In this document: piece by piece, positions 37,874 through 42,518 of the stretch
Numbering within the stretch: the first letter of the stretch is position 1
How the letters are laid out: every line of letters begins with the position of its first letter
Source: Oculina patagonica
Taxonomy: Eukaryota
Assembly: GCF_052425735.1 (NCBI RefSeq)
Contig: NC_135759.1
Coordinates: forward strand, 46,128,001-46,192,000
Direction of reading: 5' to 3'
Length of the DNA stretch: 64,000 nt
Position numbers and translations under genes: made by a program
The notes under the pieces: model-generated
The model's database searches: none
Told to the model about the DNA's origin: nothing
What the model saw: only the letters and a program-made list of their open reading frames with translations

Positions 37874-38214
37874 AATGATTAGAGAGAGAGTCACGAGATC
37901 ACCGAAACATTTCATTGCAGCTTACATGACGGTCACAGTGAAAAAGCATCGTTCCCAGTCTTTCTTACCGAGTTTGGCGTCGTTCAAGCTTCTCTTTCTT
38001 GAAATCTTCTTTGTTGGACAGGTTAAGTTTACTAATCCTGCTTCATCGAGCGCTGTGTCCTCGGATTTGTACCTCAGACGTAACTATAACCTTCATTATT
38101 GTTCTTTTTATGTTTTTATATTGCATTTTAGGAGGATGAGCAGTTCTCCCAAGCATAAATATGTCTTATGTCAAAGACAGTTTTGCTTACATCATGAAAA
38201 GCTGTTTGTTAGTT

Positions 38215-38526
38215 GAGCCTCTCTATGGGTATTTTCGAAGAAATCGAAGACGCGAAGATCACTGCGGCAAATCGAAGATCTCAAGATTGAAGCGAAGATC
38301 TGAAATTGACCAAAATTCGCGTGATCAAATTGAACACTCAGATATAAAACTGTCAAAGCTAGTAAACACCACAGAAAATATCTGCAATTCCTGATTTTTT
38401 AATTTGACCACATTTCACGAAAAAAAAACGAACGAATATAAAACGAAGATCTGCTTTAAAAAGAACGAAGATTTGCAAAAAAAATTGCGAAGAAAACGAA
38501 GACCGTGGGTACCCATAGAGAGGCTC
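38215..38526. mobile_element. MITE with GAGCCTCTCTATGGGTA TIRs; interrupted second copy at ~49408-50270
   Basis: Perfect 17-bp TIR; TTAGTT on both flanks; body rich in CGAAGA. The copy at 49408-50270 is split by a pogo MITE. Confidence 0.85.
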
Positions 38527-39492
38527 TTAGTTAGTCTCTGTGACTTGTAGGCTCTGAAAGCTTCTTGTTTGCTGGGTTTTAGTGCATATGATCGACTTAA
38601 GCAAACTTATTTCACGAAGATATTTTGTCAGCGTTTCACGCCAGTACCAACTTTTGGCACCACTTTCGACTTAAATTGGAAAGTCGCTTTCAAATTTTAC
38701 TTTCCATTTCAAAACATGACTCTCTAAAAACAGATTAATATTCGTGGTGAAAAAATGCGGTATATGATACCCAGACTTGCTTGAGTAATCTTTCACAGTA
38801 TTCCACTTTTTAACACAAAGCCATACATATCAAGGTAAAACTTGCTTCCCACTAGACCAGATTAGGCTAGTATTTTGGTTATTTTTTTTTAAGTTTTTAC
38901 TTAAGGAAAAAATGTTATGACAAGTGGTTGAGTGTTAGGGTCGAGCTCCCTTTATTTTCTCATCAGAGCTTCATTTGATCATACAAATGTCCCTGGCAAA
39001 CAGCTTAGTAAGCTTCACAAAAAGGAGCTTTGCTGCGTAGCACTCGATAGTTTCAATAAGTGTTTAATAGACTGTGTTTTTGGAGTGCATGGAGAGTTTT
39101 AAAAACAAACGTTTCAGGGAAACCCCTTCATCAGTGTTGGAACGGTTGAGCTTAGTGTACGTTAAACGTCTTGACACGCAAAAAAGATTCTGTTTAGATG
39201 CTTTCATTTAATGTGTTAACATAAATATAATTAATGCCAATTTTTGAAATTCACAAAATAACAATATGTAACGTTAACTTTTCTATAATAAGGTATGATT
39301 TTTTTGCAGATAAAAAATTGTCTGAAAAAGTATATTAATATTATTATAAAAGTAAAATTATTATTTCATAACTTCTGGTAAGCAATAATAAAATCGCAAA
39401 TTTAAAAAATACGAAAACACTTTTTAAGAACATGTTTCGGCATGACTTATACCATCTTCAGTTTATTGAGATAAATGCTACCTACATATATA

Positions 39493-41321
39493 CCGTATTT
39501 ACCCGTATATTAGTCGATCCCGTGTATAAGTCGACCCCCTATTTTTGAGGCCATAAACTAAGATTTTTTCATTTCTGGGTAACAATTTTTTGGAAAACTA
39601 AACTTGTGTTTCTTAGAATTTCGTTTCAGGTAAAGATACTTAATGAAAAAAACACAGCAAGTTTCAAATATGTGAAGTTTATTATCATGCTTACGCGAGC
39701 ATTTTAGCAACACATGTTTATGCAGGCGTTTTGTCCATTATTTTTTGAAACAGCCTTATAAAATCAAACACACTAATTTCAAACGAACCTTTCTAATTGT
39801 GGAGATATAGTAGCGGCTTTAGAAGACAAGCAAAACACCAAGGAACATCAGAAAACTTTGAAACCCACTTGATAAACAAAGTCAAAGCTTGCTTGGGGAA
39901 CTTGGTAACCAAGCTACAAAATCGGTGAGGTACTGGTAACTGATAACTACACGTGCTTGCATCATGCCAGGTTACTAAGTAGTGAAGTTCGAAGCAAGAA
40001 AGATCATGCATGAAGATGTTTTTCTCGAGTGGATTTACCAGCTTTATTAGTGTCATCATCATTAAAAACGTTTGTATATAAAGGTGATGAACCTTTTTAC
40101 ATGCACGATGAGATAAAAGTAATTTTAAATGGACAAAGCGTTTTAATCAAAACAGTGGTTTCCAAATCTGTCTATAAGGAACTTCGGGATAGAATCATCA
40201 CCCCACCAACTGCTCAAATGAATTTTAATGCGCGATTTATAAATGATGTCTTAGAATGGAAAGAAATCTACGCCTTGCCTTTTCGCGTTGCATTGGATAC
40301 AAAACTGCGTGAATTTCAGACAATATACTTAATAGATGTCTTGTGACAAATATCCTTTTATACAAAATCAACGTCGTACAATCTCAAGCCTGCTCCCTTT
40401 GCGGTGAAATTACTCAAAGAATTTCTGGGCTGAGGTTATCAAATGGCTTGAAAATCTTGACGTAAAGATTAAACAGCTTTCTGACAAAGATATAATGTTT
40501 GTCATTCTAAAGTGCGAGGATGAGTTATTTGTTAACCACATTTTATTAGTCTCCAAACAATATTTATATTCTTGTAGACAAAGTAAATCTTTACCTTCAA
40601 TAAGAGTATTAAACTCGAAGATTACATTGATTTACCAAATAGAGGCAATGATATCAAAATCAAACAATAAGTTGTCAGCTCACAATAAGAAATGGAGCAA
40701 ATATAAAAATAAATTAGTATGCAATCCTGCACCGTTTGCCGCAAATTAATAATAGCATTGTAGAATAACATTTAAAACTGATAAATGAAGTGAGGACTCT
40801 GTGTCAACTCCGATTAATTTTGTAGTATTTGTAGTGTCTGTTATAATTTAGTAATTAAAAGCAGTTTATAGTGTGGTAATTAAAATATTGTATTTTACTA
40901 TATTTTTTGTAGTGTTTGTAAAAGTGTTGTAACTTAAACATTGTATGTATTTTTTAGAAACTAATAAAAATAATTAAAATACAAAAAAAAGCTTTATTAG
41001 TGGAAAATGTCAACTCTTTATTCAAACCTTGTGCCAGTGAGTCTCTACAACATTCAGGTTAATATTAAGCGGATAAATCGCAATGAATTTCGATGTGAAC
41101 TGCCAATTTAACGACACAGATAGCAAAGTGAAAGGACACCGTAACCTGTACTGTTGTTTATTTGATGTTTGTTGACATCTAAAACAATTGTTATGCTAAT
41201 TGCGCAGGATTTATTTAACTGGTGCTTGGGACAAAAATTTTGACCCGTGTATAAGTCGAGGGCGATTTTTTGGACCGATTTTTAGGTGGAAAAAGGTCAA
41301 CTTATACACGGGTAAATACGG
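39493..41321. mobile_element. pogo/Tigger-like MITE carrying a LINE insertion
   Basis: TA|CCGTATTTACCCGT...ACGGGTAAATACGG|TA; subterminal CCCGTGTATAAGTCGA repeats. Confidence 0.85.
40053..40989 (+). mobile_element. 5'-truncated L1/Tx1-like LINE (zf-RVT C-terminus, 3'UTR, poly-A)
   Basis: 'EWKEIYALPFRVALDTKLREFQ', CxxC remnant, 'FVNHILLVSKQYLYSCR..KW'. AATAAA plus A-tail ending 40990. TSD AGCTTTATTAGTG at 40040-40052 and 40990-41002. Confidence 0.9.
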
Positions 41322-41476
41322 TAAGGTTCTCTGCATTTATCTCAATAAACTGAAGATGGCATAAGTCATGCCGAAACATGTTTTTAAAAAAGTGTTTTCG
41401 TATTTTTTAAATTTAAAATTATTATTATAATTGCTAACTTATTTGCTTACAAAAGTTGCAGGAAGTTGAATTAAAG

Positions 41477-42518
41477 ATGTCTCATATACCAGCAAAGATT
41501 GTGCTCAAGAGCACTACAAGCAAGACGCTAAATGATCGGTGAGCAATCCATCATGTACCTTGCTGTACATGGCGTTATAGTACCTTATATCTGGCTTCAT
41601 GCATGCAGTCTTGTTATGGCTACTAGATAAGAGCTTTATAAGCCTCATATAAGTGTCATTAATGACCTTAATACAAGCCATAGAATATCATGGCTACAAT
41701 CCAAGCCATAGAAAAATATTGCTGAGGCATTATGTAGAAATGTTATGGCTAAAAAGTTGGTTAGAATTTGTTTGTTGAGTGAAATGAAATGCATACTTGT
41801 GCAGTGAGTGTGCAATTGCATTGAAGCCAGTCATATAATACAAGGTACAAATTCCTCCTCTCCATCCATCTTCTGAAGCTTCACTGAAATGGCCAAAAAG
41901 CAAATCCGTTCGCCGCCACAAGTTACCATCACTGGAGTCCGAAGCAATCAGTTCCAGATGTCACAAGCCAGCATGAAGAATCGTCGCCTTGCAGCACAGA
42001 TGGCCAACAGACCAGGTGTTCAAGCAGCCCTTGGAGGAAACACATCCAGCCTCAAAAGCCGACTTGGCTCACCGACCAGAGGAAGGGGCATAAATGCTAA
42101 AGGACAGTTGAAAAACCGACTGGGCACTAGTCCAACAGGTGTTGTAGGAAGGACTCGTGGTAGAGGACGTGGTAGTAGTTTTGGTGGTGGGTTTAGACAA
42201 GGAAGAGGTCTTGGTAGTAATATGCGTGGTGGTGTCCGTGGGAAAAGAGGAGGAAGTGGAGTTGTTCGGGGTGGTCGTGGAATGCAAGGTGCTGGTAGAG
42301 GGGCTCGGGGTGGTCGTGGAATGCAAGGTGCTGGTAGAGGGGCTCGTGGTGGTAGAGGGGCAGCTAGGGGTCGTGGTCGGGGACGTGGCAGAGGTGATAA
42401 GCCAGTGTCCAGAGACAAATTGGATGAAGAACTTGATAAATACATGTCCAAAACAAAAAGCCATCTTGATGCTGAACTTGATGAATATATGCAGCATGCA
42501 GAGGAAGACAACGAATAA
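41477..42518 (+). CDS. CHTOP: Chromatin target of PRMT1 (CHTOP/FOP), 233 aa, 2 coding exons
   Basis: Exon 41477-41538 (MSHIPAKIVLKSTTSKTLNDR) splices to 41879-42518 (FTEMAKK...'QASMKNRRLAAQMANRP', RG/RGG-rich region, C-terminal FoP duplication 'LDEELDKYMSKTKSHLDAELDEYM'). A CAG acceptor at 41459-41461 implies an upstream 5'UTR exon. Confidence 0.93.

Follow-up and report, generated by a model that had tools for sequence, protein, structure and literature searches.

Is the single coding intron of CHTOP in the coral Oculina patagonica a regulated element, and is it the same element through which human CHTOP controls its own expression? CHTOP is a core mRNA-export (TREX) factor linked to PRMT1, and to our knowledge its self-regulation by intron retention is known from mammalian cells only. 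The human gene has an exon 2 of 81 nt and retains intron 2, which carries a stop at its 5' end, and transcripts that keep the intron are targeted to NMD (Izumikawa et al. 2016, PMC5175361). The N1 domain of human CHTOP binds predicted intronic stem-loops and its RG domain binds exon 2, raising retention, and hnRNP H antagonises the circuit through intronic G-runs (PMC5175361). The sequence-only reading of the window (the whole stretch of 64,000 nucleotides of O. patagonica DNA analysed here) had noted the retention of human intron 2, the binding of a stem-loop and NMD, all in agreement with that paper, and had proposed that the circuit may predate the cnidarian-bilaterian split. According to the same authors, no CHTOP orthologue is known outside vertebrates (PMC5175361).

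A CHTOP gene with one coding intron

The host gene is the O. patagonica orthologue of CHTOP. It carries Pfam domain PF13865, its best named matches are CHTOP and chromatin target of PRMT1, and the conserved parts of the protein are the N-terminal KIVLKSTT..LNDRF and the C-terminal LD.ELD.YMSKTK.HLDAELD.YM. Translated exon 3 matched, at 100% identity, the O. patagonica entry "uncharacterized protein LOC144644937 isoform X1" (NCBI). The exons joined without 41539-41878 give exactly the 233-aa NCBI protein of this species, which makes this intron the sole coding intron of isoform X1. Since an RNA contig links a non-coding exon ending at 38079 to 41456, the exon that holds the ATG is exon 2 and the intron at 41539-41878 is intron 2, numbered as in the human gene. 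The gene is laid out on the window as follows (X1 and X5 in the lines below are sequencing runs; a slash marks a splice junction here and in the text).

38050 to 38079, + strand: 3' end of exon 1, non-coding (5'UTR); the loose 30-nt end of the run X5 RNA contig, joined to 41456, with 1 mismatch
38080, + strand: intron 1 donor GTAACT, directly after exon 1
38080 to 41455, + strand: intron 1, a 5'UTR intron of about 3.4 kb made mostly of repeated elements; from the joined ends in the X5 contig
41456 to 41538, + strand: exon 2, 83 nt, with 20 2/3 codons (MSHIPAKIVLKSTTSKTLND-R) from the ATG at 41477, preceded by 21 nt of 5'UTR; ends ..AAT GAT CG
41539 to 41878, + strand: intron 2, 340 nt, phase 2, GTGAGC...CTTCTGAAG (end CTGAAG); spliced joint in X1 and X5; single copy
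41540 to 41542, + strand: in-frame TGA read on retention (CGG TGA at 41537-41542)
41879 to 42518, + strand: exon 3, the remaining coding sequence (FTEMAKKQ...EEDNE), starting C TTC ACT GAA ATG, with the stop at 42516-42518

Several features of the surrounding gene were seen along the way. Exon 2 starts at tandem acceptors (AAAAG/TTGCAG/G, 41454-41461) that lie 6 nt apart, and it is 83 nt long or, via the second acceptor AG at 41460-41461, 77 nt; the bridging contig of run X5 uses the upstream AG, and the tandem-acceptor motif AAAGTTGCAGG is kept in most corals. A 209-aa ORF opens with the methionine at 41889-41891, which lies 10 nt inside exon 3 (FTEM, and FTNM in fish) and is shared by vertebrates and most corals. 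Further into exon 3, at 42266-42353, 2.3 tandem copies of a 39-nt unit (97% match) place GRGMQGAGRGARG two times in the RG domain. Exactly one such unit separates isoform X1 from NCBI isoform X2 (220 aa), a difference that may be a repeat-number allele, slippage or an assembly difference rather than alternative splicing. Intron 1 is mainly high-copy repeat over 39500-41431, where the DNA runs reach 5-200 times single-copy depth, and a pair of 20-nt terminal inverted repeats within it (41240-41259 and 41297-41316) resembles a miniature transposon. Contigs of the RNA runs jump about 950 nt of intron 1, from 40039 to 40990, suggesting either a polymorphic insertion or further copies of the element.

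Intron 2 splits LNDR/FT and its retention reads CGG TGA, ending translation at 21 aa (MSHIPAKIVLKSTTSKTLNDR), just as had been read from the sequence. The same CGG TGA stands at the start of the intron in 16 of the 16 orthologues examined, corals, the octocoral and fish among them. Because a phase-2 intron with a G/GTGAG donor always reads xxG TGA, the immediate stop is automatic and carries no weight alone as a special feature.

The position of the intron is shared more widely. In the teleost Cynoglossus semilaevis, the first coding exon of CHTOPa encodes MSAASSQKVVLKSTTKVSLNER and ends CG/GTGAGG, and the next begins C TTC ACT AAC ATG; this intron (LNER/F) equals the coral one in codon and phase, its retention again reads CGG TGA, and the three further coding introns of fish CHTOPa are absent from corals. 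The octocoral Dendronephthya has a single coding intron at SDR/FGE, which is 97 nt long, in the same phase, plain, and closed by a TAG acceptor. A non-scleractinian hexacoral (L015, 2701-3035) likewise has a single coding intron, of 335 nt, at the same position (LNDR/FTE). The acceptors of fish (...CCCACTTCTAAAG/CTTCAC), coral (...CCATCTTCTGAAG/CTTCAC) and L015 (...CTCTTCAAG/CTTCAC) are all AAG, an uncommon acceptor, behind a C-rich tract. With the human intron placed through the exon 2 and stop described in PMC5175361, the homology of position on which the proposal of a shared circuit depends was upheld at the level of codon and phase, the bilaterian evidence being one teleost.

Constraint and predicted structure in intron 2

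We compared 12 stony corals, Oculina and eleven others, using loci from ENA and Logan assemblies and JGI metagenomes. Synonymous sites were heavily diverged, with four-fold sites 45-59% identical to Oculina in the seven tabulated pairs. In a seven-coral alignment of 3.6 kb, intron 1 and the 3' flank reached identities of 0.04-0.4 (about 0.2) and were essentially unalignable, whereas intron 2 reached 0.42-0.92. Over all pairs of the 12 corals, identity was 0.59 at four-fold sites; within the intron it was 0.74 over the first 70 columns, 0.51 in the middle and 0.89 over the last 67, with 0.94 for the pyrimidine tract plus acceptor. Since identity at the intron ends exceeds that of four-fold sites, constraint there is much stronger than at silent coding sites, and the alignments indicate that intron 2 is under strong purifying selection in stony corals. 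Point variants among individuals in the runs fell only at 41659-41716, in the intron centre. The intron-containing contig of run X1 (41509-41907) lacks 24 nt relative to the reference, which reveals an indel allele within intron 2. A transposon origin of the intron was rejected, as it has a single match in the genome.

The elements of the intron that enter the argument are these, with coral identities.

41552 to 41571, + strand: hairpin CATGTAC with GTACATG, 14 nt 3' of the 5' splice site; some hairpin here in 12 of 12 corals
41580 to 41603, + strand: 5' arms, H1 GTACCTT at 41580-41586 and H2 CTGGCTTCA at 41591-41599 with TGCA; identity 0.80
41670 to 41723, + strand: interior tandem unit AAT.CAAGCCATAGA...ATGGCT with ATGGCT and AGCCAT; partly conserved, alternative small hairpins possible
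41817 to 41848, + strand: 3' arms, H2 TGCA-T-TGAAGCCAG, an 11-nt loop and H1 AAGGTAC; identity 0.89
41849 to 41878, + strand: nearly invariant C-rich pyrimidine tract with its AAG acceptor, AAATTCCTCCTCTCCATCCATCTTCTGAAG; identity 0.94 over 12 corals

The weak AAG acceptor behind a C-rich tract, noticed in the sequence at the outset, is present, and both this acceptor and the non-consensus +6 C of the donor are invariant across the aligned stony corals. The tract is the most conserved part of the intron and contains CUCUCC and UCUUCU motifs. The one branch-like motif, a possible branch site GTCA just 3' of H2, would fall in the loop separating H2 from H1. A branch site would be expected where the 3' arm of H1 lies; the earlier suggestion that pairing occludes the branch point is a conjecture, as no site can be assigned clearly.

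Much of the constraint on the intron could be explained by conserved sequence to which proteins putatively bind. One alternative is that retention is regulated by other RNA-binding proteins (for example PTB- or PCBP-like) reading the C-rich/UCUU tract or the repeated AUGGCU and AGCCAU motifs, the likeness to human CHTOP being one of inherited position only. The supremacy of the tract with its CUCUCC and UCUUCU fits this account, as do the lack of similarity to vertebrate intron elements (the fish intron was compared), an octocoral intron devoid of the coral elements and the absence of the G-runs through which hnRNP H acts in human cells, there being no GGG anywhere in 41539-41878. Autoregulation is, however, the commonest logic for retained or poison elements of RNA-processing genes and has been demonstrated for this very intron in human cells, and we regard control by such other proteins as quite unlikely.

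Pairing of the two ends of the intron was the central structural claim of the sequence-only reading, and the MFE and centroid folds do both contain a long-range helix. H1 joins GTACCTT to AAGGTAC (41842-41848); H2 joins CTGGCTTCA to TGAAGCCAG (41822-41830) and is lengthened by TGCA with TGCA, with one bulge. The local hairpin near the 5' splice site (CATGTAC at 41552-41558, GTACATG at 41565-41571) and the repeated complementary motifs of the interior (ATGGCT three times, AGCCATAGA twice) were also found as read. The MFE of the whole intron is ordinary against shuffles (z -1.23, with 8 of 100 shuffles folding equally well) and was for that reason left out of the evidence. The two terminal 90-nt segments of the intron pair with each other more strongly than do those of dinucleotide shuffles (z -2.4, a value reached by 32 of 2000). 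The RNAalifold consensus of the 12 coral introns retained the 5' hairpin, H1 and H2, and the arm-to-arm duplex was predicted at -22 to -29 kcal/mol in each of the 12 corals.

Nearly all of the 20 predicted pairs of the end-to-end helices are invariant, with one compensatory pair and two wobble changes: H1 of L016 has a U-A to C-G change with a register shift, and H2 of L006 has the two wobble-compatible changes. One helix pair is broken in each of L001 and L007. Covariation is scarce because the helix arms are almost invariant; of the expectation that alignment would reveal conserved, covarying stems, the conservation of ends and stems across 12 stony corals stood, but covariation was thin. 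In the 5' hairpin, 90.8% of the alignment cells of the 12 corals are paired and three pairs changed on both sides, a count matched by 42 of 500 shuffles. Compensatory doubles swap two of its pairs in L006, G-U substitutions occur in several species, and L007 and L016 have a shorter hairpin on the same CCAU-AUGG base. On this comparative evidence the 5' hairpin is better supported than the H1 and H2 helices. A competing pairing, TGTACCTTG with CAAGGTACA, had also been proposed; it is possible in Oculina but in only 6 of the 12 corals, being kept in Oculina, L002, L003, L010, L011 and L014 and weakened or lost in L001, L005, L006, L007, L016 and L018. Taken together, the folds and alignments suggest that intron 2 likely contains RNA structure.

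Two further observations concern the 3' end of the intron. Near-copies of the start of exon 3 lie inside it (ATGGCTAAAAAG at 41745 against ATGGCCAAAAAG at 41889; TGAAATG at 41780 against 41885), and the TGAAGC of the H2 3' arm is able to pair with GCTTCA across the 3' splice site.

The motifs of the coral intron had no sequence counterpart in the fish, octocoral or L015 introns, and end-to-end pairing was absent from the introns of the fish and the octocoral. L015 is predicted to close its own ends with unrelated sequence, AAGGACUU pairing with AAGUCCUU at the pyrimidine tract (z -2.8 for the MFE, -1.35 for the duplex), a closure also given as AAGGACTT with AAGTCCTT over that tract, and its intron may be an independent version of the coral architecture. 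Judged by its position and phase, the coral intron is the orthologue of the known autoregulatory retained intron, with RNA elements that appear specific to its lineage.

Spliced and retained RNA

Four sequencing runs were used, of which X15 and X17 act as genomic DNA (contigs totalling about 0.5-1 Gb, with even coverage of intron and exon and no spliced joint) and X1 and X5 act as transcriptomes. The spliced GT..AG joint 41538/41879 was present in contigs of X1 (depth 222) and X5 (depth 55). Alongside it, a contig that spans 41509-41907 (30 nt of exon 2, the whole intron and 29 nt of exon 3) had depths of 71 in X1 and 43 in X5. With exon 3 at depths of 301 (X1) and 154 (X5), the intron-containing form amounts to about 24-28% of exon depth. 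The repeat at 41340-41431 has about 210 times single-copy depth in X15, yet its depth is 335 in X1 and 176 in X5; this caps single-copy DNA at about 1.6, and genomic carry-over therefore cannot explain the intron signal. The retention ratio that the sequence-only reading had asked for is thus available from contigs of two runs: spliced and retained RNA coexist. The intron-bearing form makes up around a quarter of transcripts in the two studies, a value that is only indicative since it comes from per-contig k-mer depths of unspecified library types. Because these are contig depths from two runs and intron 1 is too repetitive to serve as a clean control intron in the stretch examined, ordinary pre-mRNA could account for part of the intron signal. 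Three Logan contigs (L004, L019 and L020), considered as retained transcripts of other corals, were set aside as uninformative, being collinear with genomic DNA including the upstream intron.

These data bear on a second alternative, in which intron 2 is constitutive but difficult to splice, its conserved blocks and helices serve only to make a weak 3' site work, and the intron-containing RNA is slowly spliced pre-mRNA. In yeast and fly introns, helices that join the ends close to the 5' splice site and the branch region do aid splicing, the spliced form predominates in the RNA runs, and the structure statistics are modest. Selection could nevertheless improve the AAG and its tract, yet the weak site is frozen in 12 corals, in L015 and in fish; 24-28% unspliced is high for mere kinetics in an intron of 340 nt; and the homologous human intron is proven to be regulatory (PMC5175361). 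We consider a merely slow intron rather unlikely.

A third alternative places the function outside splicing altogether, in an element that acts as DNA (an enhancer within the intron, or an alternative promoter) or in an unrecognised small RNA encoded by the intron, with retention incidental. Strong non-coding conservation in a first coding intron would be expected of such an element, and the conserved methionine 10 nt into exon 3, with its 209-aa ORF, would suit an internal start. The depths of exon 2 and exon 3 agree, however, giving no sign of an internal start, and conservation peaks at the RNA signals near the splice sites and at two mutually complementary blocks, where compensatory and wobble changes preserve pairing. 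An Rfam scan of 41300-42000 at E<=1 returned no family, leaving a known snoRNA, miRNA or riboswitch unsupported, and no C/D or H/ACA boxes were present. A DNA element or small RNA is, on this evidence, very improbable.

Retention as a proposed control on CHTOP output

We favour, at roughly even odds, a reading in which intron 2 is a conserved, purposely inefficient intron whose retention sets CHTOP output, with CHTOP protein itself the likeliest controller. That the intron serves as a dosage-control switch we infer to be very likely. A weak 3' end that does not vary (AAG and a C-rich tract, lacking a clear branch site), the hairpin beside the 5' splice site and the two helices that tie +42 to -31 would together set the rate at which intron 2 is removed. 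Where the intron is retained, ribosomes would halt at the donor-made TGA after 21 codons and the transcript would be non-productive, so that gene output would depend on the spliced fraction; the retained transcript would then be held in the nucleus or degraded via its pseudo-3'UTR of about 1 kb or more. CHTOP protein sensing its own level would raise retention and close a negative feedback loop, and by analogy with human cells it is the most likely controller.

The likenesses to human and mouse CHTOP (Izumikawa et al. 2016, PMC5175361) run through the whole arrangement: an orthologous gene; an intron after a short, ATG-bearing exon 2 (81 vs 83 nt), in phase 2 at LN(E/D)R/F (checked in the teleost) and with a stop at its very 5' end; conservation of the intron within the clade; predicted stem-loops with repeated motifs; and retained and spliced forms found together. 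The coral intron differs in being 340 nt rather than 1641 nt long, in elements that share no sequence with the fish intron, and in a predicted end-to-end helix and 5' hairpin where human CHTOP has two internal stem-loops 300-440 nt into the intron. Unlike human CHTOP, the coral gene has no introns downstream of the stop. With no exon junction after the stop, EJC-dependent (classical) NMD is impossible, and silencing of the retained form would need NMD triggered by a long 3'UTR or detention in the nucleus.

Other systems offer partial parallels. Detained introns in RNA-processing genes were reportedly described by Boutz and colleagues in 2015. The coral intron resembles them in being short, conserved and weak in its splice signals, in an export/processing gene with a sizeable unspliced fraction, the coral case being one of contigs only. 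PRMTs and CHTOP have been linked to detained introns (PMC8765754). As in the poison exons and retained introns of SR and hnRNP genes, the gene encodes an RNA-binding protein, the non-coding sequence is conserved above the level of synonymous sites and inclusion brings a premature stop; unlike SR/hnRNP poison exons, the coral element is a whole small intron that is retained, not a cassette exon, and it is conserved within stony corals and not across phyla. The boxes about 40 nt from the 5' and 30-60 nt from the 3' splice site, with the interior looped out, recall the intron-bridging "zipper" stems of yeast and Drosophila, which bring the branch point closer to the 5' splice site, and conserved long-range structures of human introns. 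Such stems usually promote constitutive splicing, whereas the coral stems lie in a partly retained intron and, in some species, a local pairing may compete for one arm. A literature search for cnidarian CHTOP splicing found no paper.

As to age, autoregulation of CHTOP at the base of animals is plausible. We advance only tentatively the fuller proposal that a retention valve on CHTOP dosage was already in the cnidarian-bilaterian ancestor. Under this proposal, the position, the stop and the weak AAG (...CTTCTRAAG/CTTCAC, coral and fish) would have persisted for over 600 million years, with the protein-binding RNA elements replaced in each lineage, corals having come to use an end-to-end helix switch and no EJC-dependent NMD. 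The earlier suggestion that feedback is why this intron is kept in the coding sequence has a simpler counterpart. The 5'-most introns tend to escape intron loss, and the survival of this one may simply reflect that.

For work on splicing and structure, the coral intron is a useful, well-delimited RNA of 340 nt with predicted helices that can be tested. It raises the question of how a retained-intron transcript is silenced when no exon junction lies downstream. It may also provide a tractable second example of the CHTOP circuit which, if confirmed, would date that circuit to early animals.
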